Below the pieces are notes generated by a model that was given only the letters and a program-made list of their open reading frames with translations, ran no database searches and had not been told where the DNA came from. From positions 124,001 to 188,000 of the IMG/VR virus record IMGVR_UViG_3300043418_000072: 64,000 bases of DNA. One strand, 5' to 3'. Of the stretch, positions 26,500-55,953 are shown piece after piece. The stretch's first letter is position 1. Each line of letters starts with the position of its first letter. A program made the translations under genes and the position numbers.

Positions 26500-26773
26500 G
26501 TTGTTTACTCAGTATATCAAAAAGTGTGCCAATTTTAAAAACTGCTATATTGTCGGCAGGCTCCTCTACATCGAGTGCAGAGTGGAATTCTATTAGTGTG
26601 CGCATTGCAATCTGCCCAAATGAAATGCCAAACAGTTCAACCCATCTAGTTTTCATTAAGGACTTTGTTCCGTCAAATGTTGCATAGTAGCAATCATCAA
26701 TGATGTCGATACTAACTTTAACCCCGAGAGGTTTTAGTTTAGCTTTGCATTTATCAACAAATTCAAAATCCAT
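26483..26773 (-). CDS. Hypothetical protein
   Basis: TAATG-coupled; ends in TAG. Confidence 0.65.
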   Translation of the reverse strand: MDFEFVDKCKAKLKPLGVKVSIDIIDDCYYATFDGTKSLMKTRWVELFGISFGQIAMRTLIEFHSALDVEEPADNIAVFKIGTLFDILSKQHEQTL

Positions 26774-27039
26774 TAGGACCACTTTAGTGTAAACATCATT
26801 GCATCTTGCTCTCGCTTGAATGCAAAGTAACTGCCGACATTACGCCACTCGCTACTTTTGAGATTCTCGTAGCACCAGCGCTCTTGTTTATCTGTGGTCT
26901 CGGCTTTGACGTGGTACGGCCAATACTTCTTGTTTAGTACTCTCATGCGATGTTCCTCATCAATTTGGGCCCAAAATGCTCTGCTTCGTGGGCCTTCAAA
27001 ACAGCTTGGGTACATGCTGCTGATATCATTATCGATCAC
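26773..27039 (-). CDS. W-cassette; N-terminal PolB motif A-like peptide
   Basis: Ends FKREQDAMMFTLKWS; GTGA-coupled. Confidence 0.8.
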   Translation of the reverse strand: MIDNDISSMYPSCFEGPRSRAFWAQIDEEHRMRVLNKKYWPYHVKAETTDKQERWCYENLKSSEWRNVGSYFAFKREQDAMMFTLKWS

Positions 27040-27251
27040 GCCCATTTTAGTAGAAATGCAGTTATCTCTGCCCGTGTTTTAAACTTAAACGTGTCAAAGC
27101 TCGTGCGGCGCCCGTAGCCAACCTGATCACACCATTTTTGAACGGGATCCATGTCCTCTTCACGCAGGAAAGATTCGTAGCCCCGCGGAGCAACGGGCAT
27201 CGTTGCACGAAGCTGCTTACCCTCGCGTAGCCATTTGATCTTCTTTTCCAT
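27036..27251 (-). CDS. W-cassette
   Basis: Ends AFLLKWA. Confidence 0.8.
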   Translation of the reverse strand: MEKKIKWLREGKQLRATMPVAPRGYESFLREEDMDPVQKWCDQVGYGRRTSFDTFKFKTRAEITAFLLKWA

Positions 27252-27256
27252 GCTGT

Positions 27257-27285
27257 ATTATAGCATAACACCCAATTTAGGTCAA
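27257..27285 (-). promoter_or_regulatory. sigma70-type promoter inside array
   Basis: TTGACC-17-TATAAT; -35 overlaps a TGA stop. Confidence 0.8.
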
Positions 27286-27494
27286 CTCCAACGTAAGCAG
27301 AATAAAGTTAATACTTTTTCATTGGGTACTACCACTGTCATTCCTTGCACTTGGGAATCGGTTTCTTTACACCAGTCTGCCAAGTCTTGGTAGTGTGCGC
27401 TCCAGTACATAATGTCTGACAGAACAATTAGGTGGCCACCATTAAACCATGCGTCCGTTTGCTCAGACTGTGTTGGTAGTACGTAGCGTGAAAT
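27282..27494 (-). CDS. W-cassette (not in track; start uncertain)
   Basis: ...LADWCKETD...TLFCLRWS; no ATG/GTG/TTG at expected start. Confidence 0.6.
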   Translation of the reverse strand: MSRYVLPTQSEQTDAWFNGGHLIVLSDIMYWSAHYQDLADWCKETDSQVQGMTVVVPNEKVLTLFCLRWS

Positions 27495-27495
27495 A

Positions 27496-27894
27496 TTAGC
27501 CCCACTTCAGCACGAATGCTGTCCTATCTTCGGCTCGTTTAAAGCAATAACGGTAGTTAATTTTATCCCATATAAATTCAGGATGCTCGTTGGAGCAGCG
27601 TGGTCCGAATGTTTCTTCACACCATGCATCAACTTGTTCGTAATGCGCCTGGGTTCCTTTGATGTTCCAGAATGCTCCTGCAGACAGGGGCAATCGTGCC
27701 CAATACCATTCCACGATGTTGTTTTCGGTTGCATGACTAGCGGCTTCATCCACGTAAGTCTCCCCGGTTTCGAGTTCGATTCCCATATCCATATGCTGCA
27801 CACCAATGATGTCAGTTGCGATCATTGTGGGCATGACCTTACGGATCATTGGGATCAAGATTTTCATTTGATCGTTGATATTCTTATCAGTCAT
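27496..27894 (-). CDS. W-cassette; N-terminal major-capsid Gol-like peptide
   Basis: DAWCEETFGP, ends AFVLKWG. Confidence 0.8.
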   Translation of the reverse strand: MTDKNINDQMKILIPMIRKVMPTMIATDIIGVQHMDMGIELETGETYVDEAASHATENNIVEWYWARLPLSAGAFWNIKGTQAHYEQVDAWCEETFGPRCSNEHPEFIWDKINYRYCFKRAEDRTAFVLKWG

Positions 27895-28078
27895 TTTGCG
27901 TCCATTTCAATTCATACATAATGTAAACATCTTCATTCATCCAGAGATTATCCAGTCCGTAATTGTAGACTGTACCCCACCGGTCGCCTTCGGGCCCAAA
28001 GTTTTGCTCAAGCCAATGCCATATAGTGGCCTTACGTGGATGCCCCCAATGTTCAATAGCTAGGCCGTATTGCTTCAT
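27887..28078 (-). CDS. W-cassette
   Basis: WLEQNFGP, MYELKW. Confidence 0.75.
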   Translation of the reverse strand: MKQYGLAIEHWGHPRKATIWHWLEQNFGPEGDRWGTVYNYGLDNLWMNEDVYIMYELKWTQND

Positions 28079-28365
28079 AGCCATTTCAACTTGATAAACG
28101 CCAGCAGGTCTTCACGCACAATGTAGATAGCACGGTGCCTGCCGCCGTATATTCTCCAGCGTTCTTTTCCGCCGTTTTCTTCAATCCAGTCACCAAACCA
28201 ATAGCTACAGTTTAACCGACTCCACACATGGCCGTCGTCTTCTTTAAACCCGTACTCGCAGCCTGGCTCAACATAATACAGTCTATCGCCGTGTACCATA
28301 TCATGTTTTGGGTCATGCTTGGACCGAATCCACTCTTGTGAATTAGATCTAGGTCTTTCCATCAT
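28075..28365 (-). CDS. W-cassette
   Basis: Ends FIKLKWL. Confidence 0.75.
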   Translation of the reverse strand: MMERPRSNSQEWIRSKHDPKHDMVHGDRLYYVEPGCEYGFKEDDGHVWSRLNCSYWFGDWIEENGGKERWRIYGGRHRAIYIVREDLLAFIKLKWL

Positions 28366-28574
28366 GCCCACCTCAGTGCAAACATTGCAGCATCTTGTTC
28401 TCGTGCAAAGTAGTATATACGATTTTCAGGGTTAACAAAATCCACTCCGTAATAATCGTAGTCCATATTTAAAATATTGTCCAGCAACCATATACGCAGG
28501 TCTCTAAACTGTCCAGTACTGCGCCATGGTACAGTGACTCGAATTGTACACCAATATTTCTCATGCCGACTCAT
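28362..28574 (-). CDS. W-cassette
   Basis: Ends EQDAAMFALRWA. Confidence 0.8.
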   Translation of the reverse strand: MSRHEKYWCTIRVTVPWRSTGQFRDLRIWLLDNILNMDYDYYGVDFVNPENRIYYFAREQDAAMFALRWA

Positions 28575-28591
28575 GACCACCTCAGTACAAA
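28571..28591 (-). repeat. LRWS junction repeat (minus strand TT[GC/TA]..[T/C]TGAGGTGGTCATGA)
   Basis: 12-mer TCATGACCACCT exact at 28571, 28807, 29324, 44853, 45737, 45964, 46212, 46433; many near copies. Confidence 0.95.
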
Positions 28592-28810
28592 CCATTCAGC
28601 GTCTTTTTTATCACGGAAATCAAACCATTCAATATCAAATGTACCGTCAATGGTTTCACTGCCCATGAACCCTGGGTGATCCTTGCCATAAGTCCAGCGT
28701 TTAAGATTGCCATTATGTACTTCCGGTGGCCCAAAGTTCTTGGTCATCCAATACCACATTTCAGACATTTCTAAAATCGTTCGCTGAGTATTCTTAGTAT
28801 AAACTTTCAT
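28571..28810 (-). CDS. W-cassette
   Basis: WMTKNFGP, ends WFVLRWS. Confidence 0.8.
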   Translation of the reverse strand: MKVYTKNTQRTILEMSEMWYWMTKNFGPPEVHNGNLKRWTYGKDHPGFMGSETIDGTFDIEWFDFRDKKDAEWFVLRWS

Positions 28811-29052
28811 GACCACCTTAATACAAACCAAGCAAACTTCTTTTCATCAATGACATTGTACCCAACTATCTTGTTATGGTACCCTGACAACAGTATCTCT
28901 ACACCGCACACAGTTTCTAGAAAATGCAAGTAAGCATCTTCTTTGATTTGGCCAGTGACGACCTTTGCTTCTGGCGGCAATATGATAGGCTTTTTAAGAA
29001 ATTCGTTATTAGCCTGTCTGACTACAATCTTTTTTACAAGGTCTAAATCCAT
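28807..29052 (-). CDS. W-cassette
   Basis: Ends WFVLRWS. Confidence 0.8.
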   Translation of the reverse strand: MDLDLVKKIVVRQANNEFLKKPIILPPEAKVVTGQIKEDAYLHFLETVCGVEILLSGYHNKIVGYNVIDEKKFAWFVLRWS

Positions 29053-29327
29053 TAACTCCACCTTAGTACAAACAACGCATACTCTTGCTCACATAAGAAC
29101 TTGAACGTATACCTGCCAGTGTATCTCCATTGGTCACCGGCAACGAGTTCTTCTTCACGCTCGGCACTTATAAGTTTGCACCCGCGTTCTCGCAACCATC
29201 TGTATGCTTTGACATATACACTATAGCTAGGCACAGTGTGATACAACCAGTTATTACAAGATGCACCCTCGCATCTATGCTCGTGGCGACAAATATCATC
29301 CCACTCTAACTTAACGGTATCTGTCAT
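29052..29327 (-). CDS. W-cassette
   Basis: Ends LFVLRWS. Confidence 0.8.
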   Translation of the reverse strand: MTDTVKLEWDDICRHEHRCEGASCNNWLYHTVPSYSVYVKAYRWLRERGCKLISAEREEELVAGDQWRYTGRYTFKFLCEQEYALFVLRWS

Positions 29328-29662
29328 GACCACCTCAACACAAACAGAGTTAAGTCTTCCTTACTTGTAAACCAGAACTCGCGTCCAAATATTTGATATT
29401 GCGCTGTAGTGTTCAGGTGTATCCATTTCACAACCTCTGCTATTTGGTGGTTGCCTGGTGTAGCAAACTTGTCGCTAGTAAACGGTGCCTTGACCCATCC
29501 TTCTAACATAAGTCTTTGCCTTTTGATAGTGTTGACAATTTCGTCATCGATCTCTTTTTGCAATGCTGCTCCAACCTCTTGCCATACTTCGTCGTCCTCT
29601 GGCTTCTCAATGGTCCATTTGACTTTGATGGCACGAGTCTTTGCTGCAATAGTTTGTTTCAT
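29324..29662 (-). CDS. W-cassette; N-terminal major-capsid-like segment
   Basis: IAAKTRAIKVKWTIE; ends LFVLRWS. Confidence 0.8.
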   Translation of the reverse strand: MKQTIAAKTRAIKVKWTIEKPEDDEVWQEVGAALQKEIDDEIVNTIKRQRLMLEGWVKAPFTSDKFATPGNHQIAEVVKWIHLNTTAQYQIFGREFWFTSKEDLTLFVLRWS

Positions 29663-30078
29663 GACCATTTTAGTAACAGCATTGAATACAGTTCTTCGTG
29701 TATATTGTAGTTGTTGAACGTGGGGTGACCAAATCGCAGTGCGCCTGTGTTGTAGTGACGGCACCACATATCGGGGTCTTGCTCTTGCACCCACCCGCTA
29801 ATAGTTGAAGGACGACAATGCACAGTGTACCATGTAGCACCAGCTAGAGCAAACGTATCTAACTTCTGGATTTGCTCCTTAATACCCATCTCGTAGTATC
29901 TGCTCTTTAGCATTTGGTAAGTCATTGTGGACTTGCCAGTTTGTCTACCTCCGGCAAAAATCATCATTTCATCAGGATGTATTCCACCTGAGATGTTTTG
30001 AAAAACAGATGAAGACCCGCGCGGCATTACTGCTTCCATTGTTTCAATATCCAGTACTACGGTGTTGCGTTTTGTCAT
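29659..30078 (-). CDS. W-cassette; N-terminal helicase Walker A-like segment
   Basis: IFAGGRQTGKST; ends MLLLKWS. Confidence 0.8.
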   Translation of the reverse strand: MTKRNTVVLDIETMEAVMPRGSSSVFQNISGGIHPDEMMIFAGGRQTGKSTMTYQMLKSRYYEMGIKEQIQKLDTFALAGATWYTVHCRPSTISGWVQEQDPDMWCRHYNTGALRFGHPTFNNYNIHEELYSMLLLKWS

Positions 30079-30278
30079 AGCCATCTCATTATAAAAAGCA
30101 TCTTATGTTCTTCCTTAGAGAACATAAACATACTGTCAAGATATTCCCAATTCTGCCCGTAGTGCTCACGTAGCCAGTTACTAATTTGATACCAAGTACC
30201 GCCGGGAGTATACCAATCTCCTGTACGCTTAAAGCGCACATGGTACGGATATAGTTCTCTTGTAGTTTTGGTTCTCAT
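30075..30278 (-). CDS. W-cassette
   Basis: WLREHYG, ends LFIMRWL. Confidence 0.8.
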   Translation of the reverse strand: MRTKTTRELYPYHVRFKRTGDWYTPGGTWYQISNWLREHYGQNWEYLDSMFMFSKEEHKMLFIMRWL

Positions 30279-30637
30279 TGGGCCCACATCAATGCTGCTA
30301 TTGTAGCATACTTTGTCTTTCCTACCCGAAACTTAATATCCAGAGTATCTATTTCATCTGTCCAAAATCCAAAAGTTCCCATTCTCCATTCCCAATCAAT
30401 GCCCTGACGCCCAACATGCTCTTCTAACCATGGGCGATAGTGATCGTTTGGATCAGCGGAGTCGACGATTACCTCTTCGCCATCAGGATCACAACCCAGA
30501 GAAATTGGGCCATTGGGCCAAATGACCCCAATGCTAGTGCCAGGCACAATGGTCCAGTAAAACCATTCTTTCCATTCTATAAACTTACCAAATTTTACCC
30601 AATCGCATAGCCTGTTCCAGAGATTCCGATCATCCAT
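30275..30637 (-). CDS. W-cassette with N-terminal extension
   Basis: WLEEHVG, ends AALMWAQ. Confidence 0.7.
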   Translation of the reverse strand: MDDRNLWNRLCDWVKFGKFIEWKEWFYWTIVPGTSIGVIWPNGPISLGCDPDGEEVIVDSADPNDHYRPWLEEHVGRQGIDWEWRMGTFGFWTDEIDTLDIKFRVGKTKYATIAALMWAQ

Positions 30638-30638
30638 A

Positions 30639-30869
30639 TTATTTCCATTTCAATGCAAAGAAGGTTGCATCTTTGCGATGTTTAAAGTAGAAAAATGTTG
30701 TGCCAAACGCACTAGCCATGCACCATGTGCCTAACCCTTCCCACTCAACTGGCTTGGACCAAACGTGGTTGCTATAACGAGGATTAGACCCAATATTGTG
30801 CTCGCACCATTCTTCCATTTCACCCTGTAAGTGATAACGATCTTTACCAAATTCAACAGTAGTTGTCAT
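30639..30869 (-). CDS. W-cassette
   Basis: WCEHNIG, ends FFALKWK. Confidence 0.8.
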   Translation of the reverse strand: MTTTVEFGKDRYHLQGEMEEWCEHNIGSNPRYSNHVWSKPVEWEGLGTWCMASAFGTTFFYFKHRKDATFFALKWK

Positions 30870-31099
30870 GACCATCTCAACATAAAAATTGTTCTATCCG
30901 ATTCATTAATAAAGCCCCAATGCTGTTCAGCCCTGTCGCTCCAGCTACCCTGTTTGTTTAACAGCACGGTGCGATATTCCTGTATCATCCAAAGGTAATA
31001 AGGAGTTTCGTAATGATTTACGTTCATCATGTAGTACTCACGTGATTTAGCGTAGTAGGGATCTCGTTCGCAGTAAAATTGGACTAGGTCTGTTTTCAT
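30866..31099 (-). CDS. W-cassette
   Basis: Ends IFMLRWS. Confidence 0.8.
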   Translation of the reverse strand: MKTDLVQFYCERDPYYAKSREYYMMNVNHYETPYYLWMIQEYRTVLLNKQGSWSDRAEQHWGFINESDRTIFMLRWS

Positions 31100-31356
31100 G
31101 ACCATCTCAGCAAAAACGCTACCCTATCTTCATCATTACGAAACCAAAACTTTGCATTGTTAGCATACCAACGAGCACCGGGTTCCCATACACCCATTTC
31201 TGCACTGGCACCAAAGGTTTCTACACACCATGCTAACATATTGCGCCAATTGGTATTTGTGTCATTTAAGCTACTAGGAATCCACCAATCAAAGTCTGGT
31301 CTAACCGTGTAGTAGCGAGCTCCGTGTATGCGCCCTTCTAACAATTCAAACTTCAT
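31096..31356 (-). CDS. W-cassette
   Basis: WCVETFG, ends AFLLRWS. Confidence 0.8.
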   Translation of the reverse strand: MKFELLEGRIHGARYYTVRPDFDWWIPSSLNDTNTNWRNMLAWCVETFGASAEMGVWEPGARWYANNAKFWFRNDEDRVAFLLRWS

Positions 31357-31576
31357 TGCTTGCTTTCAGTGCAAACCAAGTTATGATTTCGTTATTCAGG
31401 CAATCGTGTCGAATCCATACACCATCGGGCGCACTAAACCATTCGCGGTCCACAAGCGGCATCGTGATACGGTTGTCACTAATGTGCAGGCGGCACAGGT
31501 CAATTTCCTCACTGCCCCATATAAAGTCCTTGGGAACGTGTTTGAATTTAAAAAATCGGTGAGTCTCGCTATACAT
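31346..31576 (-). CDS. W-cassette, variant tail
   Basis: WFALKA. Confidence 0.7.
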   Translation of the reverse strand: MYSETHRFFKFKHVPKDFIWGSEEIDLCRLHISDNRITMPLVDREWFSAPDGVWIRHDCLNNEIITWFALKASNEV

Positions 31577-31833
31577 TACTTTGCCCACTTTAGTGCGAAT
31601 AGCACTGCTTCTTCATCACATTCAAACTCAATGAACTTTTCACGAAGATACCCGGGACTGTGGTAGTAAGGATGGCGTGTGTTTGCTTTAAGCCATTCAT
31701 TGACTATATAATCCTTGTAGCTGATTTGCCATTGTGCTGGGACACCATCAATGGTGTGTGCATAGACAACACGGTGCAACACGGGAAAATTAACACCTGG
31801 GAATAACGGATTAGTTTTATAAGTTACTGCCAT
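31576..31833 (-). CDS. W-cassette
   Basis: Ends IEFECDEEAVLFALKWAK. Confidence 0.8.
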   Translation of the reverse strand: MAVTYKTNPLFPGVNFPVLHRVVYAHTIDGVPAQWQISYKDYIVNEWLKANTRHPYYHSPGYLREKFIEFECDEEAVLFALKWAK

Positions 31834-32051
31834 AACAATCCAAACAGTGTTGCATCTTCATCCCGATAAAAACGAATCGCCCATCGTTCGTCGCCATATC
31901 TGCCGGGCCCTTTGTTAACAATAGCAACACGGACGATGCAGGAACGTTCTTGAGGAAAGTGTGCGTCAAGCCACTTTTGTAGAGTTTCCATAGAGAACGT
32001 GCGACTGCCATTCATTAAGGTTGGGTATGGAATTTCAAGCAACTGCTGCAC
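31824..32051 (-). CDS. W-cassette
   Basis: Ends DEDATLFGLLWQ. Confidence 0.8.
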   Translation of the reverse strand: MQQLLEIPYPTLMNGSRTFSMETLQKWLDAHFPQERSCIVRVAIVNKGPGRYGDERWAIRFYRDEDATLFGLLWQ

Positions 32052-32391
32052 CTTGCCTTAAATAGTACCAAGCCAAGCGACTTTCTAATAAGTCATAAAA
32101 TGCTCTAGCTTCGTGTTTGTGAAAAAACACAACTCCCCCAACCACATACATGTCTTCCCATCCGTATGTCATATCAGACCGTTGAAAATAATTTTTTTCG
32201 CTAATCCACAGTGTTTCTAGTTCGCCATTGTTTAGCGTAATGCCCAGGCCAACTTCACGGCATCCAATGTCTCGGAACAGAAGATCAACTAACTTGTCTC
32301 GCTGTCTAGCATTATGTGCAAAGTTATTCTCAGCCCATGTCACTAACCAAGTGTTGTTAGGAAGATCTGTGAGTTTAAAAGGATTAGACAT
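32035..32391 (-). CDS. Hypothetical protein within array
   Basis: No clear W tail. Confidence 0.7.
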   Translation of the reverse strand: MSNPFKLTDLPNNTWLVTWAENNFAHNARQRDKLVDLLFRDIGCREVGLGITLNNGELETLWISEKNYFQRSDMTYGWEDMYVVGGVVFFHKHEARAFYDLLESRLAWYYLRQGAAVA

Positions 32392-32392
32392 G

Positions 32393-32674
32393 CTATGCCC
32401 ATTTCAAACTAAACATTAACAGATCGCTTTCGCGGCGGAATACAAAGATCAAATCTGAGATATCTTCAAGATTGTCATCGTTGTCGTAGTACTCTTCTTC
32501 CTCTTCGTCGCTGCCTGGAACTAGTACTTCTTCATAGCAGTACCAATCTTCGGCGCCCAGCCATGTATTGTTTGCATGTCGCTTGCTACCAGGGCCAACG
32601 TTAGCGTTGAGCCATGCTTCGATTTGATCTAATTGATCGTGATGCTTGTGTGCTAGTTTAAGTTTATAACTCAT
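32393..32674 (-). CDS. W-cassette with acidic insert
   Basis: WLNANVGP, ends MFSLKWA-TAG. Confidence 0.8.
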   Translation of the reverse strand: MSYKLKLAHKHHDQLDQIEAWLNANVGPGSKRHANNTWLGAEDWYCYEEVLVPGSDEEEEEYYDNDDNLEDISDLIFVFRRESDLLMFSLKWA

Positions 32675-32940
32675 GTGAATTTCATTACTAAAAATGTATA
32701 GGCTTTTGTAGCTTCTTCTAAGTTACGGTATTTCCAGTGTGTGCCAGCTTGCCCGCTGCGGCAGCGAGTTGGGTCAATCACATCGCGAACTTGCTCGGGG
32801 AAACTTTTCTCCCCTGCAGGTCGTTCTCGGTCCATCCAGTAATCATATGTCATCTCGACACGATAATGCACCTTGTCGCTTTTGCGATGGCGCCATTTGA
32901 TTAATCGGAAATTCTCGCCGCGGTGGATAATATTGTCCAT
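32671..32940 (-). CDS. W-cassette, variant tail
   Basis: EEATKAYTFLVMKF. Confidence 0.6.
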   Translation of the reverse strand: MDNIIHRGENFRLIKWRHRKSDKVHYRVEMTYDYWMDRERPAGEKSFPEQVRDVIDPTRCRSGQAGTHWKYRNLEEATKAYTFLVMKFT

Positions 32941-32941
32941 A

Positions 32942-33418
32942 TCATTCAGTTCCCAAAATATTCCACATACCCAATTGCTCTTTGAGATGTCTATTCTCTG
33001 CTTGTACCTTGTCAATTACTTCGTGAGCTTTTTCAGCTTCTCTAACTGCGTAAAGGTGATTGGATTTTGCAGAGTCAATTGCCCGCTGCGCATCTACTAG
33101 AAGTTCTGTAACGGTGCGTCGACTTAACTTATCAAGTTCTTCACGAGCATCCGCTAAATCCATTTCGGCTACCGCACGGTCATCTTCTGCGTAGGCAACC
33201 ATCTTTTGCAAGTGGGTGATGTAATCTCCGGGGTAGTAGTCTTGGTGATCGTCTGTAAAGACCCATGTGTTAGGATCCATGCCTGCTTCGACTAAATCAC
33301 CAACAAGCCCACCGTTAGGTGCAGACAGCATGTTGATTAATCGTTTGACCAATGGATCAGTGCTAGTCAAATCCAAGTAGCGTAGCAGCTCTACGTCAGA
33401 TAGATGATTTAGATTCAT
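32942..33418 (-). CDS. Coiled-coil hypothetical protein
   Basis: Heptad-like C-terminal half. Confidence 0.7.
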   Translation of the reverse strand: MNLNHLSDVELLRYLDLTSTDPLVKRLINMLSAPNGGLVGDLVEAGMDPNTWVFTDDHQDYYPGDYITHLQKMVAYAEDDRAVAEMDLADAREELDKLSRRTVTELLVDAQRAIDSAKSNHLYAVREAEKAHEVIDKVQAENRHLKEQLGMWNILGTE

Positions 33419-33725
33419 GTTTTAAAATCTCGAATAGTGTTGCATATTCAACCCAGGGTTCCATGTGAAAGCCTTTGCCCCACACTGCCCAGAATCGTTG
33501 TTTGTAAACAGTGCGTAACCAAATGCGATTACCACCTATTGTTTTAACTGGCCAAAGTGCAAACGTCTTGCGCCATGGGTAGCAGTCAGGCCCGTTGTAA
33601 ATTCGTTCAGTTATGTCCAACTCCACAGTCTCCGATCCTATTAGCAATGGCGCAATGCCTGTTGGGTTCTTGTCCCACTTAAGGCGATGTTCTCCGATTC
33701 GGCCATTTTTAAGACGAACTTTCAT
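33396..33725 (-). CDS. Hypothetical protein
   Basis: WRKTFALWPVKT. Confidence 0.65.
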   Translation of the reverse strand: MKVRLKNGRIGEHRLKWDKNPTGIAPLLIGSETVELDITERIYNGPDCYPWRKTFALWPVKTIGGNRIWLRTVYKQRFWAVWGKGFHMEPWVEYATLFEILKHESKSSI

Positions 33726-34006
33726 TAATACGAATGTGTTACCGACTCAGTATAGATTTGTTGTAGTAGATGGATTCTACCTGCGTACCGTAATTGTAAC
33801 ATACATTCACCTTTATCGTCAAATGTGGTTAGTTTTATAACCCCGGGCGAGCTGCGGTAGTGATAGACCTGCCCGCTGGTTTCAATACGCTGATGCTCAC
33901 CTTGCTGGGCGTCTAGTTGTATGCCATTGTTTTTGCAGTAGTCTACATCAGACTGGTCGGGGATAACATTGTGATCCAACACCCAAATTCTTACTATAGT
34001 TAACAT
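33725..34006 (-). CDS. W-cassette-like variant
   Basis: MLQLRY; similar to 48754..49047. Confidence 0.6.
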   Translation of the reverse strand: MLTIVRIWVLDHNVIPDQSDVDYCKNNGIQLDAQQGEHQRIETSGQVYHYRSSPGVIKLTTFDDKGECMLQLRYAGRIHLLQQIYTESVTHSY

Positions 34007-34263
34007 ACACTATCCGCAAAACTCAGAGCAAACATAATAGCAGCTTGTTCCCATTCAAATTGAAATGTAGTGTATTCACTATCCCAAGTTTTTGTGCCTC
34101 CACGCCAATCAATGTAGTAGCGTTTGAAATAGCCCTTATCGCCTGTTGGATAGTCGTCGCACCACTTCATCATAGCATTGACTTCAGGCGAGTTCTTTTT
34201 AATACGCACCTTATATCTAAAGTCGGGGTACTGATTCCCGCCACCGCCGTAAAATAATTCCAT
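34000..34263 (-). CDS. W-cassette
   Basis: KWCDDY, FEWEQAAIMFALSF. Confidence 0.75.
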   Translation of the reverse strand: MELFYGGGGNQYPDFRYKVRIKKNSPEVNAMMKWCDDYPTGDKGYFKRYYIDWRGGTKTWDSEYTTFQFEWEQAAIMFALSFADSVC

Positions 34264-34481
34264 TAGCTCCACCTCAACACAAACATTGTAGCATCTTCTT
34301 CCCTGCGAAATTTAATCCATCCACCATGGCTATCCCAAGTGCCATTACCTAATGCTAGTCCCGGGTGACCGAATGTGGTCCAGCACCATCCGTATATTTC
34401 GCTCATCTCTGGACCTTGTGGACTGTAGTACATTTCCCACTCGTAGTATCGGTCCGGGCGATGTTTGAATTTAATATTCAT
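34263..34481 (-). CDS. W-cassette
   Basis: WCWTTFG, ends EEDATMFVLRWS. Confidence 0.8.
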   Translation of the reverse strand: MNIKFKHRPDRYYEWEMYYSPQGPEMSEIYGWCWTTFGHPGLALGNGTWDSHGGWIKFRREEDATMFVLRWS

Positions 34482-34897
34482 TACACACTCCAGTATAGAC
34501 TAAACATTACAGCATCTTGCTCATTGTTAAATGCAAAAAATAGAATGTTGTGGCTTAGACCCATGCACCCTTGCGTCCATTCGCCATCCCAACTCTTGTC
34601 AACTGGGAGGATATCTTCTCTCCATTTACCGGTGGCATTTGCTGCGCACCACGTGGTCATGTTATCAACTACGGTGATCCATCCTTGGCCATGCCGCCGT
34701 TCCAGTGGCACTGTGTCGTCAAACGGGACGAGGTAAGGGTAGCCACGATACACGTCCTTACGAATACTACCACCACGTGCGCAAAAATCAGGATCATTTA
34801 TGAGATCAAACTGGCGCTGAGTCCATCCCTTCTTCTTAAGGTAACGGGCATGTCGCCATGCTTGAAACCTACCTACCGTAGCGTGTAGTAACTTCAT
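34481..34897 (-). CDS. W-cassette with N-terminal extension
   Basis: Ends EQDAVMFSLYWSV. Confidence 0.75.
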   Translation of the reverse strand: MKLLHATVGRFQAWRHARYLKKKGWTQRQFDLINDPDFCARGGSIRKDVYRGYPYLVPFDDTVPLERRHGQGWITVVDNMTTWCAANATGKWREDILPVDKSWDGEWTQGCMGLSHNILFFAFNNEQDAVMFSLYWSV

Positions 34898-35084
34898 CTA
34901 GTGTTTTCTTTGCTATTTTTCCTGACGGATGATCTGGGTGCATACGTGCGATATCATCTAGTGCAGTCCACATCAACTCGTGTTCGTGTTGTTGCTGGTA
35001 TACCTTATCCCGCAAGCGACTGGCATCCATAATGCTTAGGACACCAGCAATTAACTTGGGAAGGATACGAGCAAGGAATTCCAA
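34869..35084 (-). CDS. Hypothetical protein
   Basis: Start uncertain; ends in TAG. Confidence 0.55.
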   Translation of the reverse strand: MEFLARILPKLIAGVLSIMDASRLRDKVYQQQHEHELMWTALDDIARMHPDHPSGKIAKKTLDEVTTRYGR

Positions 35085-35312
35085 TTATAAGTACTTCAAT
35101 CTAAACATTGTTTCTGCTGCGTCATTGAAGAAGTCTAAGTAGACAGTAGTGATGTAACCTGTTTGTTCTCGGTAAACCTGATGATGGCGGTCGGTGAATC
35201 CTAACTCACGCTTCATTACAGATCGCAAGAGCCAAACACTAGGCTTGTCTGCGTACTCAATTTTAATCTGAGCTCGGATCTTGCGCCACTCAGTATCGGT
35301 TAGTGTGATCAT
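35085..35312 (-). CDS. W-cassette
   Basis: Ends TMFRLKYL. Confidence 0.75.
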   Translation of the reverse strand: MITLTDTEWRKIRAQIKIEYADKPSVWLLRSVMKRELGFTDRHHQVYREQTGYITTVYLDFFNDAAETMFRLKYL

Positions 35313-35541
35313 ACTTTAACTTGAAAAAGGTTGCATCCTCATCTTTAAGTTTAGCAGTTACTCTGTAACGAAGAGAGTATGAGTGGTAATCGTTGCACTT
35401 GCTCCATTGCGGGGTTTCAATTGCATTAGCCATAACCCATTTCCCTGCATCACTTTGCTGCCATTCCCATAGAGGCCATGCGGCATAAAGGTCCGGGTCA
35501 TCAACATCCCCCACTGAAAATTCATGAACAGCTAGAGTCAC
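35290..35541 (-). CDS. W-cassette
   Basis: DEDATFFKLKY. Confidence 0.75.
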   Translation of the reverse strand: MTLAVHEFSVGDVDDPDLYAAWPLWEWQQSDAGKWVMANAIETPQWSKCNDYHSYSLRYRVTAKLKDEDATFFKLKYDHTNRY

Positions 35542-35720
35542 CGCCATTTTAATGCAAATAGTGTAGCATCAGAGGGACTAGAGAAATCAAACCTATACGT
35601 GGGATTGTTACCCAGCATACTGTTTAAGTCTATTGTCCATCCCTTAATACCAAATTGTTGTCTGCACCAGCCGCCCGCCTCAAGCGCCTTATCGGCACCA
35701 TTAATTGTGATAGAGTTCAT
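35538..35720 (-). CDS. W-cassette (first of array 1)
   Basis: WCRQQFG, ends LFALKWR. Confidence 0.8.
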   Translation of the reverse strand: MNSITINGADKALEAGGWCRQQFGIKGWTIDLNSMLGNNPTYRFDFSSPSDATLFALKWR

Positions 35721-35726
35721 AGTACT

Positions 35727-35755
35727 ATTATACACTAAATGCCTTTATGCGTCAA
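35727..35755 (-). promoter_or_regulatory. sigma70-type promoter heading W-array 1
   Basis: TTGACG-17-TATAAT. Confidence 0.8.
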
Positions 35756-43990: not shown

Positions 43991-44170
43991 CTAACTCCAT
44001 TTTAAAACAAACATCATTTCATCCTCGGGCGTGTCAAACTCAACCATAAAGTACAAGTAATCGTCTTTACGGTAGCTGTCATGAAAATGCCCATTGGGAA
44101 TATCACTGAGCCCGCTTTCAATCATGCGTTGCTGAATGTTGACCCAGTCAATCATACGGTACGTTAACAT
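43991..44170 (-). CDS. W-cassette (59 aa, not in track)
   Basis: ...VEFDTPEDEMMFVLKWS-TAG. Confidence 0.75.
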   Translation of the reverse strand: MLTYRMIDWVNIQQRMIESGLSDIPNGHFHDSYRKDDYLYFMVEFDTPEDEMMFVLKWS

Positions 44171-44171
44171 G

Positions 44172-44462
44172 TCATGCCCACTTTAGTAAGAACCAAGCAT
44201 ACTTTTGCTCGTCGAGCACTGTGGTGATAACCCTCTGTCCACTATTGTGATAGCGATACTCAAACCCATGCACATGTTTACACCATTCCCCAAAACCAAA
44301 GTCTGTGACTGTATCTTTAATCTCAGGCCACTGGCTCCATGCGTTTTGAATTGCAGTTAGTGCTTGATCCTTTGGTGCCATTATTTCCTTACAGAGGTTT
44401 GTGCCGTAGACGCTGTTTAGTTGCATCTTGCGATGCAATTTTGCCCATTCTTCTTTAGTCAT
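44172..44462 (-). CDS. W-cassette; N-terminal PolB motif B-like peptide
   Basis: RKMQLNSVYG; ends WFLLKWA. Confidence 0.8.
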   Translation of the reverse strand: MTKEEWAKLHRKMQLNSVYGTNLCKEIMAPKDQALTAIQNAWSQWPEIKDTVTDFGFGEWCKHVHGFEYRYHNSGQRVITTVLDEQKYAWFLLKWA

Positions 44463-44665
44463 GCAAACCTCAATGCAAACATGGTAGCATATTTTTCATC
44501 AGAAAAATACCAGTCAGACCATTCACCTTCACCGGTTTCCCACACATAAAACCACTCACCTCCATACTCGCCAATATTTTTTTCGCACCACTTAACTCTA
44601 GCCTCAGTGCGTTCATGGTGCCATCCATAGAGTCTGACTTCGGTCATTGGTTCACTTAATGTCAT
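44459..44665 (-). CDS. W-cassette
   Basis: WCEKNIG, ends MFALRFA. Confidence 0.8.
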   Translation of the reverse strand: MTLSEPMTEVRLYGWHHERTEARVKWCEKNIGEYGGEWFYVWETGEGEWSDWYFSDEKYATMFALRFA

Positions 44666-44856
44666 AGCCACCTCAATGCAAACAGTGTAGCATCTTCTTC
44701 TTTATGAAACCAAAATGTTCGGATAGTGTCCCATGCCCGACGCTTGCCATTAGGTTCCGGTGGTCCAAAGTTATCCAAGCACCACTTCCACGCGACCTGT
44801 GTACCACTTTCCCCGTATACATCACGAAGTTTCTTGCTGATTTTAATTTCAATCAT
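44662..44856 (-). CDS. W-cassette
   Basis: WCLDNFGP, ends LFALRWL. Confidence 0.8.
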   Translation of the reverse strand: MIEIKISKKLRDVYGESGTQVAWKWCLDNFGPPEPNGKRRAWDTIRTFWFHKEEDATLFALRWL

Positions 44857-45101
44857 GACCACCTCAACATAAACCAAGAGTACAATTCTTCGTCTTCAAA
44901 CTCGATCCAGTGCAGAACACTACTTTCAAATAAGTTGCCCACCTCTTCCATGTAGTACACTGCACGGTACTCAACCAGTGCTGCATTAACATAAGCGTCG
45001 GTTACTGCCTGTGGTCCCACTTGTTCTTGCAGGTGTGCAACAAATTTGTTCCACACAGGGATAGGTGCATAGTCTTTAACAAGATCCAATCGTATCATCA
45101 A
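44853..45101 (-). CDS. W-cassette
   Basis: Ends WFMLRWS. Confidence 0.8.
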   Translation of the reverse strand: MMIRLDLVKDYAPIPVWNKFVAHLQEQVGPQAVTDAYVNAALVEYRAVYYMEEVGNLFESSVLHWIEFEDEELYSWFMLRWS

Positions 45102-45265
45102 AACCTCAGCGCAAACTCTGTGGCTTTTAACGGGTCACGAAAACGAAAGTCCCAGCCACAGCCATCAGAACTGCACACCCAATCATTATAGTCGAGATTG
45201 GCATGGCACCATTCTGCCCCGCTGGTGTAATCATCAATTGTTACTATTGCCCATTTCGCCATCAT
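45098..45265 (-). CDS. W-cassette
   Basis: Ends EFALRF. Confidence 0.75.
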   Translation of the reverse strand: MMAKWAIVTIDDYTSGAEWCHANLDYNDWVCSSDGCGWDFRFRDPLKATEFALRF

Positions 45266-45543
45266 AAGTGCCTTAATGTAAACATAATTAGATTTTCTTC
45301 TTCGAAGAAGTCTGCATAACGCTTGCTGTATTCTGTATAAATGCGGCCACCACATGACCAAACATAATGATCAAACGCTTGACCAGCACCATAACGTAAG
45401 TTAAGTCGATCAAAGTGGTCAATCCAATGTCCCGAGGTCTTATACCCATTGTTTGCAGCCCACTTCTGGAAGATAGTGTTTAGCTGGTCGGATTCAATAC
45501 GTGCCTTTTTCATAAGGGAGTCTCTTGTATATTGCTTTTTCAT
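45262..45543 (-). CDS. W-cassette
   Basis: Ends MFTLRHL. Confidence 0.75.
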   Translation of the reverse strand: MKKQYTRDSLMKKARIESDQLNTIFQKWAANNGYKTSGHWIDHFDRLNLRYGAGQAFDHYVWSCGGRIYTEYSKRYADFFEEENLIMFTLRHL

Positions 45544-45740
45544 TTATGGATCAATGCAAACATTATAGCATCTTTTTCATTTTCGAAGTAAACGCCATGT
45601 CCTCCCATGCTAAAATGTCCGATTCCATCAAACTCTTCGCACCAAAGCAATGCCTCTATCCAACCAATGGTTTTTTGGTTTTCAGATAATGGAATGTATG
45701 TGTAGTCGCAATCCATTAGCATAGTTAGCTCTTGCTTCAT
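45540..45740 (-). CDS. W-cassette
   Basis: FENEKDAIMFAL. Confidence 0.75.
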   Translation of the reverse strand: MKQELTMLMDCDYTYIPLSENQKTIGWIEALLWCEEFDGIGHFSMGGHGVYFENEKDAIMFALIHK

Positions 45741-45967
45741 GACCACCTCAACATAAACATTGTCATGTGTTGTTCGTCAGGAAACGATACCCACAACTCG
45801 GGTTTGCGACCAACTGGTCCAACCTTAACAACATTGTAGTCTTGCTTGAGCCAATCCCAAATAGTTATGTGATGCCCGTCGTTGTTGTGTATGTCACGAC
45901 CAATGTTGTCCCAGTAGTAATTGGCAATCTTCTGAAAGTATGGGCGAATGTCTTTGCGTAGTTTCAT
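45737..45967 (-). CDS. W-cassette
   Basis: Ends MFMLRWS; close to 46433. Confidence 0.8.
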   Translation of the reverse strand: MKLRKDIRPYFQKIANYYWDNIGRDIHNNDGHHITIWDWLKQDYNVVKVGPVGRKPELWVSFPDEQHMTMFMLRWS

Positions 45968-46215
45968 GACCACCTCAACACAAACATGGTATAGTCGTGC
46001 TCGTCTTTGAAGGTCACTACAAATCTATACCCACTGTCTTTACCTTCAATACAAGCACCGACTTGAGCAATTTCTTCTTCAAGGATATGGTCCACCAATG
46101 CCGGAGGTGCGGACTTTTTAGTAATACGGCGTGCCCATACATCTGCATACCAACGCTCGAAGTAATTCCTGGGTTGTTTACAGTTGATGTTTTGGTAATA
46201 CTCTTTTACAATCAT
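45964..46215 (-). CDS. W-cassette
   Basis: Ends MFVLRWS. Confidence 0.8.
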   Translation of the reverse strand: MIVKEYYQNINCKQPRNYFERWYADVWARRITKKSAPPALVDHILEEEIAQVGACIEGKDSGYRFVVTFKDEHDYTMFVLRWS

Positions 46216-46436
46216 GACCACCTCAACACAAAGTAAGTTAAATCTTGTTCAGTGCTAAACACAATGCACTTGGTTTCGTTATTCCAGTGTGCATTGTAGT
46301 CTCTGAGAAACTCTTCTCCCGAGAGGGGAGCACGGCGGGTCTTCATCATCTCAGGTTCTATCACTGCTCTATAGAAGTTTTTGTATGCCATTGGGCTTTG
46401 GTCGTAATCGTCGGATATGTAAAGAGTTGTACTCAT
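46212..46436 (-). CDS. W-cassette
   Basis: Ends YFVLRWS. Confidence 0.8.
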   Translation of the reverse strand: MSTTLYISDDYDQSPMAYKNFYRAVIEPEMMKTRRAPLSGEEFLRDYNAHWNNETKCIVFSTEQDLTYFVLRWS

Positions 46437-46645
46437 GACCACCTCAGTATAAACCAATTGAGTGTTTTCTCATCGGGAAATGACACCACTATCTGCTGGC
46501 TGGCTGCACTGCCAAAAGTGTGGCTAATACCGTACTCACGGCCAAGCCAATCCCAGACACTAATATTAGACTTGTATAGATCATCCCAATAGTGGTTAGC
46601 AACCTTCTTGAAGTAGGGATAGATGTCTGCATAGATTTTAGTCAT
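46433..46645 (-). CDS. W-cassette
   Basis: Ends WFILRWS. Confidence 0.8.
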   Translation of the reverse strand: MTKIYADIYPYFKKVANHYWDDLYKSNISVWDWLGREYGISHTFGSAASQQIVVSFPDEKTLNWFILRWS

Positions 46646-46926
46646 GCCCACCTCAACAAGAATACTGCACGATCACGCTCGTACTTGAAGAAGATTGTTT
46701 CAAATCTCCAGATCCAGTCACGCCCAAAATGTTCTTCACACCACAGCATAACTTCTTCAAACGGTGCGGCACCATTAAACTGCCAGCAGGAGAAACAGTG
46801 ACACACAATATTAACGGCATCTGCGTCATTGGTGTACAGGCAAGGAGTCTCTGCAACAAACTCACGCAGGCGCAGGCGAAGAGTGCCGTAGATTGAATCA
46901 ATTTGCAGTGTGTCTTTTACTATCAT
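46642..46926 (-). CDS. W-cassette
   Basis: WCEEHFG, ends VFLLRWA. Confidence 0.8.
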   Translation of the reverse strand: MIVKDTLQIDSIYGTLRLRLREFVAETPCLYTNDADAVNIVCHCFSCWQFNGAAPFEEVMLWCEEHFGRDWIWRFETIFFKYERDRAVFLLRWA

Positions 46927-47144
46927 GAAAATCTCAACATAAACAACAAATAGTCGTGCTCATTCTCAAAGTAGAACTTGGTAGTCTCTGGATCTTTATC
47001 AATGGCGTTCCATTCGGATAGTGCCTGCGTGATAGAGTCGGCCTCATTGAAATCGTACCCTTGTGTTTCGGCATAGTCGCGAAAGTTTTCCCACCAATGC
47101 TTGCGTCCAGTGCCAGTTTCAGAGTCGATGTCTAGCTCAATCAT
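46923..47144 (-). CDS. W-cassette
   Basis: Ends LFMLRFS. Confidence 0.8.
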   Translation of the reverse strand: MIELDIDSETGTGRKHWWENFRDYAETQGYDFNEADSITQALSEWNAIDKDPETTKFYFENEHDYLLFMLRFS

Positions 47145-47371
47145 GACATTCTCAGTAAAAACATTACATAATCTCGTTCGTTGTTGAACACTAGAAAATT
47201 CTCTCTAGTACGCCAACTCCACTCACGCTCGGCATTAAACTCTTGTTTGACAAAGTCGAAAAACTGCATTTGAATTTTTCCAGTAGCAGTCATGTGCTTT
47301 ACAATTTTAACATTGTAATCATTTTCTGTCACAGCCACTCGATATTGCTTACGCCAGAACCGCCAGTTCAT
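47141..47371 (-). CDS. W-cassette
   Basis: Ends MFLLRMS. Confidence 0.8.
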   Translation of the reverse strand: MNWRFWRKQYRVAVTENDYNVKIVKHMTATGKIQMQFFDFVKQEFNAEREWSWRTRENFLVFNNERDYVMFLLRMS

Positions 47372-47577
47372 GAGTACTTGATCCTAAAAAATATGTATAA
47401 CTGCTCGTCGTGAAACTTGACATTATAAGTGTACTTGGCTTTGCTTTTGGCAACAGTTGCCTTCCACTTAGTTAGTTCTGTACGAATGTGTTCTTGCCCA
47501 CCAGCTGCATCAACAAAGTTGCAGAAGTAGGCATCACCGTTGCGGCCACCATAGTAATGATACTGACGTTTAATCAT
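47368..47577 (-). CDS. W-cassette
   Basis: Ends FFRIKYS. Confidence 0.75.
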   Translation of the reverse strand: MIKRQYHYYGGRNGDAYFCNFVDAAGGQEHIRTELTKWKATVAKSKAKYTYNVKFHDEQLYIFFRIKYS

Positions 47578-54618: not shown

Positions 54619-55587
54619 TTATTGTTTGCTTTTGATTAGTGATTGATGTGCAACCAACTGCTCTCTGAGTTGTGCAAATTGCGGATGCACTAGAATGTCC
54701 AATGCAGATTCAATGCTACGTAACGCGGTGTTGAATAATGCAGGCGCTAGATTGTAAATGGCTAGATATTTTGGACTGTTGGCAGTATGTGCAACAAAAG
54801 TACAGCGGGGATTGTTTTCAACTATCTCAACAAAGTACTTGGCCAACGAGTGTATGTCAACGATTGAGATATTTGTGAGAGTGATATGAAATTTTATTTG
54901 AACTGGCAAATCCACAAACTTAGTAATGTTATCTTGTACTATGGACCAGACTGTGCCCGTACGTTGCAGTTCTGCTGTTCGTCCTACTCCATCAATGCTG
55001 AGATTTAATGTTGTATTAAATTTCAGCAGCTTCTCAACAAATATTTGATTGTACACGCTTGCATTGGTGTAGACTCGCAAGTTAATGTCTGTTCTGTCTT
55101 TAGCTATCAAGTGATCTAGCAACTGATAGTAGTGCTTAATTATCATTGGCTCGCCACCAGTTAATGTAAGGAACTTTAGATTCTCTGACATGGTAAGTAT
55201 CTCGGCCCAGTCAGAATCTGAAACGGTATTAACTGAGCCATTGATGAGAGAGCTGTTTTCGCTATTGCACATCTTGCACTGAAAATTACAAAGATTGCTT
55301 GCTCTCAGCTCCATATAATCGAGTTGGTCAACGGTAGTTTCACCATATAGTGCAAGTAGGTGCTGTCTTATACTTTGCAGCCCTGCGTCTTCTAGTGACT
55401 TGCATCCTCCGCAAGTTTCGTCAAACTCGTTATTTAAAAACTTGGTTTTTAAATCTTTAAGGTAATCACTATTTCTAAACTCTACTGGACTCATGCTAAA
55501 CTTCTTAGAACTAATGCAGCACACAGCCGATTGATCGACATGGTAGAACAAAGATCGCCACGGTGCAGGACAAAAGAATTTTTTCAT
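54619..55587 (-). CDS. Radical SAM protein with N-terminal SPASM/twitch-like Cys cluster
   Basis: CNFQCKMC, TGGEPM, YTN, SIDG. Confidence 0.9.
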   Translation of the reverse strand: MKKFFCPAPWRSLFYHVDQSAVCCISSKKFSMSPVEFRNSDYLKDLKTKFLNNEFDETCGGCKSLEDAGLQSIRQHLLALYGETTVDQLDYMELRASNLCNFQCKMCNSENSSLINGSVNTVSDSDWAEILTMSENLKFLTLTGGEPMIIKHYYQLLDHLIAKDRTDINLRVYTNASVYNQIFVEKLLKFNTTLNLSIDGVGRTAELQRTGTVWSIVQDNITKFVDLPVQIKFHITLTNISIVDIHSLAKYFVEIVENNPRCTFVAHTANSPKYLAIYNLAPALFNTALRSIESALDILVHPQFAQLREQLVAHQSLIKSKQ

Positions 55588-55605
55588 AGAATAGAGTGTG
55601 TAATT

Positions 55606-55631
55606 AGAAAATAGGGGCCGAAGCCCCTATT
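55606..55631 (-). terminator. Terminator after tmRNA
   Basis: AATAGGGGC-TTCG-GCCCCTATT-TTCT. Confidence 0.85.
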
Positions 55632-55632
55632 A

Positions 55633-55953
55633 CTATTTCCTGTTGCAAGGCATAGCTGCCCCGGAAGCCTTTATCAGGCAACCATTAGAAACTGTGAGTC
55701 GTTTGCATTTACTTTTTTTGCTTCTACGGCCGGGAAACCCCAACCCTACGGCTTCTGCTTTGCCGAGCTGTCCACTTGTTTACTTGTTGCCCTGTCGAAA
55801 CCATGGCAGGCCCATCAAAAACATACTAAGCACTTTACACCGATATCGTTTCTTAAGTTCGCCCACGATGTATCGAATAGTACGCTTTTGGTGGACCTGG
55901 CGGGAGTCGAACCCGCGTCCAGAACACTTTTCTCTTTGCTTCATACAGCAATA
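55633..55953 (-). ncRNA. ssrA: Circularly permuted two-piece tmRNA; tag ANDSQFLMVA
   Basis: Acceptor piece ends ...GGGTTCGACTCCCGCCAGGTCCACCA (55889) before coding piece GGGCCTG... (55813); G3-U70; tag 55674-55706; ends approximate. Confidence 0.9.

Follow-up and report, generated by a model that had tools for sequence, protein, structure and literature searches.

A small gene of an uncultured freshwater jumbo phage encodes a major capsid protein fragment joined to an uncharacterised 'W' domain, a possible capsid mimic of untested function

The window analysed here (the whole stretch of 64,000 nucleotides, positions 124,001 to 188,000 of the 354,098-bp IMG/VR virus record IMGVR_UViG_3300043418_000072, hereafter G000) belongs to a gp23-type jumbo phage from fresh water, whose DNA is found in freshwater metagenomes. 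Megablast of the locus against GenBank phages found nothing and there is no close cultured relative, the nearest terminase (TerL) being that of the Pseudomonas phage PA5oct group (53% identity), while major capsid proteins (MCPs) of the lineage are about 70% identical to that of Vibrio phage 2.275.O. The window contains about 40 minus-strand ORFs of 60-140 aa, arranged in two tandem arrays, all of which end in a shared motif (roughly W...FG...W...F.F..E.DA..F.L(R/K)W(S/A)), referred to as the W domain. The features considered in this work are the following:

29327..29668, minus strand: CDS of a 114-aa MCP-fragment/W-domain protein (stop codon 29324-29326)
29659..29668, minus strand: ATGGTCATGA junction, in which the start codon (ATG 29666-29668; a second ATG at 29660-29662) overlaps the stop (TGA 29659-29661) of the upstream W gene
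29606..29659, minus strand: residues 4-21, equivalent to the MCP P-domain beta-strand that follows the insertion domain (T4 gp23 K256-E273)
29504..29593, minus strand: residues 26-55, equivalent to the MCP spine alpha-helix (T4 gp23 about 286-310, shared core EID.EI), preceded by a connecting loop or short helix about 6 residues shorter than in MCPs
29327..29500, minus strand: residues 57-114, the W domain (predicted strand, helix, beta-hairpin, helix; ends ...F.LRWS)
27499..27894, minus strand: sister gene for a 132-aa W-domain protein, whose residues about 10-37 (27784-27867) are the MCP N-arm/'Gol' segment
26773..35735, minus strand: first tandem array of W-domain paralogues, which contains both MCP-fragment genes
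43991..47577, minus strand: second tandem array of W-domain paralogues
27257..27285, minus strand: sigma-70-like promoter (TTGACC, 17-nt spacer, TATAAT, with an upstream TG) in an intergenic gap of the array
35727..35755, minus strand: sigma-70-like promoter (TTGACG, 17-nt spacer, TATAAT) at the head of the first array

A preliminary description, made from the sequence alone, had pointed to 29525-29653 as a second major-capsid-like fragment fused to a W domain, with 7 of 15 identities to T4 gp23 in its first block and an internal deletion before the second. This observation is confirmed: the peptides lie on the minus strand and correspond to residues 6-48 of the 114-aa ORF. A mechanical ORF list gives a longer, 156-aa form with a GTG start, which is not supported by the orthologues and family members, as they start at the ATG of the ATGGTCATGA junction overlapping the ...KWS stop of the upstream gene; the same ...RWS/KWS stop with an MVM start recurs through the array. 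The T4 string given in the preliminary description agrees with the gp23 chains in the PDB, which read kqvieaksrqlkaaysie...eimleinrevvdwi, and its first block does share 7 of 15 residues with the window peptide. The internal deletion is also real, as BLAST reports a gap of about 6 residues against the MCPs, while many family members keep that stretch (e.g. P0192 and P0131, two of the relatives retrieved in the profile search described below; P0192 has IEEAQDLLAVH against T4 IELAQDLRAVHG).

For the single sequence the evidence of homology to the capsid protein is weak but consistent. Pfam Gp23 (PF07068) matches residues 2-48 to profile positions 138-194 with an E-value of 0.004 and a score of 17.0 bits, below the gathering cut-off of 24.4 bits, and the PHROG major head protein family is reported with an E-value of 0.019; however, the orthologue from a 320,767-bp relative (G001) reaches 25.5 bits, above the cut-off, and several homologues carry a precomputed PF07068 hit. 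All 21 weak tblastn hits in 50,697 phage records fall on MCP genes. Orthologues of 67-86% identity exist, and an exhaustive profile search of 1.84 billion proteins returned 89 clusters at 50% identity, all of 62-138 aa and most of them full-length relatives of 100-123 aa, with LQ.EID.EI and R.L.A.WT conserved; two hits are truncated MCP ORFs caught only through the N-terminal piece. The ESM Atlas contains a cluster of 113 members. A fourth weak PF07068 hit, at G000 55554-55673, lies in an alternative frame of a longer ORF and was judged to be due to chance.

The absence of a profile match to Gp23 had been named in advance as the result that would overturn the assignment, and the family-level comparisons show decisively that the match exists. 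The phage's own MCP could not be compared directly, because the record ends inside gene 23 and holds only its last 74 aa; we used the MCPs of close IMG/VR relatives and of G001, whose C-terminal 74 aa are identical. Comparison of the 57-sequence family alignment with an alignment of the lineage MCPs (hhalign) gave a probability of 98% and an E-value of 2.7e-13 over 69 columns, with family columns 4-72 aligned to MCP 153-226 in template-profile numbering, i.e. residues 157-230 of the MCP of one lineage member (L008). In a search of all PDB sequences the four best hits of the family profile were T4 gp23 (residues 254-310, E-value 6e-5), followed by three hits to the gp24 vertex protein (E-value 0.025), with nothing else significant. 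In whole phage genomes the same profile finds the family member (E-value 6e-35 for the 100% identical copy in G002, a near-identical record of 240,493 bp, and 1e-38 for the G001 orthologue), W paralogues (many of them through positions 43-114), and the true MCP gene (1.3e-11 in G001 and 9.8e-11 in Vibrio phage 2.275.O). Against an HMM of the lineage MCP the window protein scores 16.8 bits, while the best of 2000 shuffles of its N-terminal 56 residues scores 7.5. A chance resemblance between a charged amphipathic helix and gp23, for which only the below-threshold Pfam and PHROG hits of this single copy speak, is refuted by these results. The window protein matches its own family end to end and shows all the elements by which we define it: the N-terminal R.L.A.WT strand motif, the LQ.EID.EI helix, a G-W hinge and a C-terminal W domain ending in F.L(R/K)W.

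The lineage MCP aligns to T4 gp23 with an E-value of 1e-41, and the fragment (residues about 3-55) maps to lineage MCP about 157-215, or T4 gp23 254-310. Residues 4-21 correspond to the P-domain beta-strand following the insertion domain (T4 256-273) and residues about 26-55 to the spine helix; the register of the latter differs by one helical turn between BLAST and hhalign because of the repeated EI..EI pattern. By the BLAST alignment the shortened loop matches T4 279-284, which includes His282 and Met284. The fragment shares AKTR and the tryptophan of 'WT' with the lineage MCP, where T4 has AKSR and 'YS'; its source is therefore the MCP of this phage lineage rather than that of T4, which refines the preliminary description, and at 35-39% identity to the MCP the capture is old.

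The remaining part of the protein, residues 57-114, is homologous to the W domain of the Gol-like sister family (hhalign probability 97.3%, E-value 1.6e-11), which is all that the two families share, and to that of the other array members. The W domain matches no Pfam, PHROG, NCBIfam or PADLOC model, a profile of it retrieves only viral 'hypothetical proteins', and its ESM Atlas neighbours are all unnamed viral clusters. AF2 modelling with the 7-sequence alignment was of no use (pLDDT 44), but with 57 sequences the mean pLDDT reached 77: residues 1-25, which include the strand-equivalent, are predicted as a low-confidence coil (pLDDT 54-65 for the strand-equivalent), residues 26-55 as a long helix (pLDDT 81-88), and the W domain as a compact unit of strand, helix, beta-hairpin and helix (pLDDT 71-91). 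Foldseek found no significant match in the PDB (all hits at E-value 0.1 or above), while BFVD and the ESM Atlas returned only uncharacterised viral proteins.

The sister 132-aa protein (27499-27894) scores 27.6 bits with Pfam Gp23, above the cut-off, and its residues 11-35 are 52% identical and 92% similar to lineage MCP 59-83, which equals T4 93-117. Its family is large (at least 150 clusters at 90% identity, most carrying a precomputed PF07068 hit), has a nearly invariant GVQPM, and aligns to MCP 56-100 (about T4 90-135) with a probability of 98.4% and an E-value of 4e-15. We tested whether the KYKFSRAKWY motif of this family is the MCP return strand, but hhalign did not recover it. We also tested whether all W proteins carry fragments of essential phage proteins: of about 40 W paralogues in the window only these two score positively against the MCP HMM (27.3 and 17.7 bits; all others at or below -1.0), while most paralogues have N-terminal extensions with no detectable source. 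The 141-aa neighbour has a Walker-A-like stretch of uncertain source, with similarity to the phage's DnaB-like helicase (E-value 0.045), an exact RQTGKST 7-mer shared with its TerL, and weak hits to many P-loop families. The interpretation offered in the preliminary description is supported by these data in each of its three claims, namely that a capsid-like fragment is present, that it is fused to the W domain, and that it derives from a capsid region different from the Gol-like one, which, together with the conservation of both fusions in related genomes, argues against a single accident.

Both fusions sit in the same order in G001, in G002 and in a more distant 363,946-bp ENA scaffold. Against the G001 orthologue, dN/dS (Nei-Gojobori method, this one pair only) is 0.20 overall, 0.33 for the fragment and 0.08 for the W domain. 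Across the wider family the most conserved N-terminal positions are those also conserved in MCPs. A co-variation test of the fragment against its own MCP was not informative, because the MCP segment is nearly invariant in the clade; the distant pair on the ENA scaffold was not included. The family is absent from the three cultured gp23-type jumbo phages searched (2.275.O, PA5oct and Atu_ph07), where the profiles hit only the MCP gene.

These observations bear on two alternative explanations. The first is a non-functional recombination scar, in which illegitimate recombination in a hyperplastic region fused a piece of gene 23 to a W gene and the piece is simply decaying. The array is indeed recombinogenic, as a minor DNA joint runs from 29344 to 31138 between the 3' ends of two W genes and loose ends sit at gene boundaries, and the loop is shortened in this copy; however, the 89 clusters, most of them full-length and keeping the fragment in frame with the same conserved core, the dN/dS of 0.33, the synteny across diverged genomes and the RNA evidence below effectively exclude it. 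The second is exaptation unrelated to capsid biology, in which the captured helix would serve only as a generic amphipathic helix, coiled coil or linker, for example for oligomerisation, with the function residing in the W domain as in the other roughly 38 paralogues with unrelated N-termini. It is in line with the higher dN/dS of the fragment, the indel-rich loop, and the existence of family members that start only at the helix and lack the strand (profile positions 30-121). On the other hand, the residues conserved across the family are the very ones conserved in MCPs (R.L.A.WT and EID.EI), over 69 aligned columns, and generic reuse of a helix would not predict a second, independent and even better conserved MCP piece on a sister W protein. 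We consider this explanation possible but less likely than the favoured one given below.

A freshwater metatranscriptome run holds an identical 1165-nt contig over 28672-29836. RNA word depth along 26500-32400 ranges from 0 (30046-31227) to 27, while the depth in the DNA run is flat at about 60-95; an RNA library can contain DNA, and the evidence is at the contig level, but this pattern argues for transcripts rather than DNA carry-over, though it does not prove it. A minor genome variant may lack the gene. A consensus scan between 26400 and 38200 found three sigma-70-like sites matching 11 of 12 positions, all on the coding strand, two of them at gaps bordering array genes (27285-27257 and 35755-35727). 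At the first, RNA depth rises about eight-fold, from about 3 above the site to 20-27 below it, while DNA depth stays flat, and an RNA contig ends at 27238 with adaptor sequence; the second was not tested further. The total count of promoter-like sites is, however, no higher than in shuffled sequence (20 found, 24.6 expected). The T4 late motif TATAAATA is absent from the arrays, with only 2 sites elsewhere in the window. We infer early or middle expression driven by the host polymerase.

The analysis establishes that the ORF encodes a two-module small protein, of which the first module descends from the gp23-type MCP and the second is the W domain shared by about 40 neighbouring paralogues, that the gene is conserved, under purifying selection and present in a metatranscriptome, and that a sister W protein carries the MCP segment from the other side of the insertion domain; the reading of the array from host-type promoters, the probable production of these proteins before the late capsid protein, and everything concerning function are inferred. 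The simplest class of mechanism is mimicry, in which an MCP element exposed only in unassembled MCP would be displayed on a small stable scaffold and occupy a partner that normally recognises that element; the strand-equivalent, unstructured on its own in the model, would be free to pair with such a partner. We tentatively favour, as the most plausible partner, a host immune sensor of newly made capsid protein, which the mimic would bind without activating, as a competitive antagonist or decoy, and the Gol-carrying sister would do the same for a Lit/EF-Tu-type sensor. [quoted passage not shown] The comparison with known sensor epitopes, proposed in the preliminary description, was made by alignment to T4 gp23 and residue assignments in PMC9546572, without structural superposition, and leaves undecided whether the fragment is equivalent to the CapRel epitope, the CapRel contact being itself an AlphaFold prediction made for a different MCP family. 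The main objection is that a faithful mimic of a trigger would be expected to activate a sensor rather than block it, and non-productive binding is unsupported. Moreover, no binding or functional data exist, the host is unknown, the fragment does not track the nearly invariant MCP segment closely (35-39% identity, with a variable or deleted loop), and, as only 2 of about 40 W paralogues carry a recognisable MCP piece, the W family as a whole is not a 'decoy library'.

Alternatively, the protein could modulate capsid assembly or folding, with the MCP-derived strand and helix binding the MCP itself (by strand pairing or helix swapping) or an MCP handler such as a chaperonin, co-chaperonin, scaffold/core protein or portal, so as to delay or tune head assembly or to poison the capsid of a co-infecting gp23-type phage. 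The fragment is the part of gp23 where gp31-bypass mutations map (G292, V306 and V307 in the spine helix), and the shortened loop corresponds to the P-domain region with His282 and Met284, which in T4, together with Met98 of the N-arm, face the portal whiskers (PMC9546572). The two MCP pieces lie immediately before and after the insertion domain, whose linkers are the equivalent of the HK97 E-loop (PMC9546572). In the HK97 fold the two E-loop strands pair, so each mimic could pair with the complementary strand of MCP, or the two W proteins could pair with each other, an inference that we did not test; no complexes were modelled. Proteins that redirect capsid assembly by binding MCP occur in phage satellites. 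However, a dominant-negative mimic of the phage's own, nearly invariant MCP segment would harm its own assembly unless tightly timed, the gene looks early rather than late, the three cultured gp23-type jumbo phages searched assemble capsids without it, and the minor genome variant may lack it. We consider this role possible but less likely than the favoured one.

A bolder reading, which is doubtful but compatible with the data, is that an uncultured clade of freshwater jumbo phages has turned pieces of its own MCP into dedicated small early proteins, with the spine-helix piece on one W-domain protein and the Gol/N-arm piece on another, which act singly, or as a pair that rebuilds a mini P-domain surface, to blind host immune systems sensing newly made capsid protein. 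This would be the first 'self-trigger mimic' anti-defence, and the W domain would be a general display scaffold of a large counter-defence arsenal. Capsid proteins have emerged as common triggers of bacterial immunity (Lit/Gol, CapRel, Thoeris, CBASS), and phages cannot easily mutate these conserved surfaces; a conserved family of small phage proteins that are literal copies of such surfaces would point to a different escape route, mimicry of the phage's own trigger, and would give a sequence-based way to locate sensor epitopes on capsid proteins, by asking which pieces phages choose to copy. If the role is instead in assembly or phage-phage competition, it would be a new class of capsid-directed regulator. 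In either case, sub-domain fragments of a structural protein can be exapted and kept under selection, and an abundant uncharacterised domain marks a large, fast-shuffling gene arsenal in jumbo phages.

The family has no name in any library searched, and literature searches found no account of capsid-fragment proteins. The arrays resemble the paralogous small early-gene arrays (hyperplastic regions) of T4-like and jumbo phages in being dense, same-strand arrays of overlapping 60-140-aa ORFs that vary between relatives and have host-type promoters; they differ in that about 40 copies share one C-terminal domain with a fixed stop/start junction and two of them carry capsid-protein pieces, of which we found no description in the searched literature. 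With respect to T4 gp23 and PF07068 (HK97 fold), the protein is a fragment homologue and not a capsid protein: it falls below the score cut-off, only about 57 of 376 profile positions are present, it has no A domain, insertion domain, N-arm or rest of the P domain and so cannot form a capsid, and it is fused to an unrelated domain and sits in an early-type array, not in the head-gene cluster. The Gol peptide of gp23, with the Lit protease and EF-Tu (e14 exclusion system), is the precedent for a short gp23 segment as a self-sufficient ligand recognised by a host system, and the sister W protein carries exactly that segment. The fragment studied here is a different region (T4 254-310, not 93-122), so it is not the Gol peptide; no Lit homologue or host is known for this phage, binding to EF-Tu domains II/III and cleavage by Lit were not assayed, and in T4 Gol is part of the capsid protein, not a separate small protein. 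In the sensing of the SECphi27 MCP by CapRelSJ46 the MCP family is different, the contact is an AlphaFold prediction supported by escape mutants, and binding activates CapRel rather than blocking it; nothing shows that the present protein binds a CapRel-like sensor. The closest functional analogue of the favoured reading is DSAD1, a phage protein that counteracts DSR2, a defence that recognises the phage tail tube protein (PMC11087589). DSAD1 reportedly acts by competing with the tail tube trigger for its site; whether the present protein occupies a sensor's trigger-binding site was not measured, and PADLOC and NCBIfam gave no match. To our knowledge DSAD1 is not a sequence-derived copy of the trigger, whereas here the candidate competitor is literally a fragment of the trigger, so that, if the favoured reading holds, this would be trigger-competitive anti-defence in which the competitor is a copy of the trigger, while independently of mechanism the finding is a conserved exaptation of sub-domain pieces of a structural protein.

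The W-domain genes are arranged on the minus strand in two stretches of the window, and the neighbouring features considered here are the following:
26773-35735, minus strand, tandem W-domain paralogues
43991-47577, minus strand, tandem W-domain paralogues
29662-30084, minus strand, the gene just upstream of the one studied here, encoding a 141-aa W protein
27252-27495, a 244-bp gap that holds the strong sigma-70-like promoter
29770-29806, site of a second allele in the RNA run
34263-34481, a W-only protein
The two stretches together comprise about 40 paralogues that share the C-terminal W domain, and many of them are joined by the same overlapping stop/start, in which a ...(R/K)WS-stop overlaps an MVM start (ATGGTCATGA). 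The domain has no family in Pfam, PHROG, NCBIfam or PADLOC and no fold match, and it is found only in uncultured viral sequences.

The N-terminal part of the 141-aa W protein contains a Walker-A-like stretch (GG..P.E..I.AGGRQTGKST), which is retained in the orthologues from the related loci L086 and L096. It resembles the DnaB-like helicase of the same phage (positions 246086-247531 of the whole virus record, G000; E-value 0.045) and shares an exact RQTGKST 7-mer with the Walker A of the phage's own TerL, but it also exhibits weak hits to many P-loop families and to an RNR large-subunit PHROG. Whether it is a third captured fragment is unresolved. In addition, a 74-aa cluster (56% viral) was found in the ESM Atlas near the W-only protein (34263-34481) in feature space, and 41% of its members carry a Pfam hit to RF3_C (release factor 3 C-terminal). 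It is possible that this is another small protein built from a fragment of a larger one, or the association may be due to chance.

Outside the window, a weak PF07068 hit (E-value 0.028) to a C-terminal motif of the MCP (..YYAPYIP..) was identified at G000 55554-55673 (L004 1123-1638). It lies in a 171-aa ORF in an alternative frame of a 362-aa ORF, and we judged it to be a chance match. The G000 record itself ends inside the major capsid gene, of which it holds only the last 74 codons (353875-354096), although CheckV rates it as 100% complete; the assembly is therefore not quite whole, or it is cut within gene 23.

In the DNA run that probably sourced the assembly, a minor contig (depth 8 against about 66, with only 21 nucleotides on one side) joins position 29344 to 31138, i.e. 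the 3' ends of two W genes, and skips 1793 bp that include the gene studied here. Other contigs diverge exactly at W-gene boundaries, with loose ends at 29324, 29052-29072 and 28592-28594. This suggests, albeit on weak evidence, cassette-like recombination between W-domain repeats and the existence of strain variants that lack this gene. The RNA run carries a second allele at 29770-29806, with seven substitutions on one contig at about half the depth; this allele is absent from the DNA run, so a related strain is present in the transcriptome sample. The relative G001 differs in another way, as its array contains an inserted 402-aa ORF with an SGGADS (PP-loop-like) motif (L086 12152-13360) at the point where the window has only the 244-bp gap with the promoter.

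In the distant relative, the Gol-carrying and the P-loop-carrying W proteins (L096 3434-3847 and 4749-5129) share a nearly invariant KYKFSRAKWY segment located just before the W domain. This motif loosely resembles the MCP return strand (KLSARWT), but the relationship was not supported by the hhalign comparison. The two proteins are close paralogues that differ mainly in the N-terminal module, as if modules were swapped onto one scaffold.
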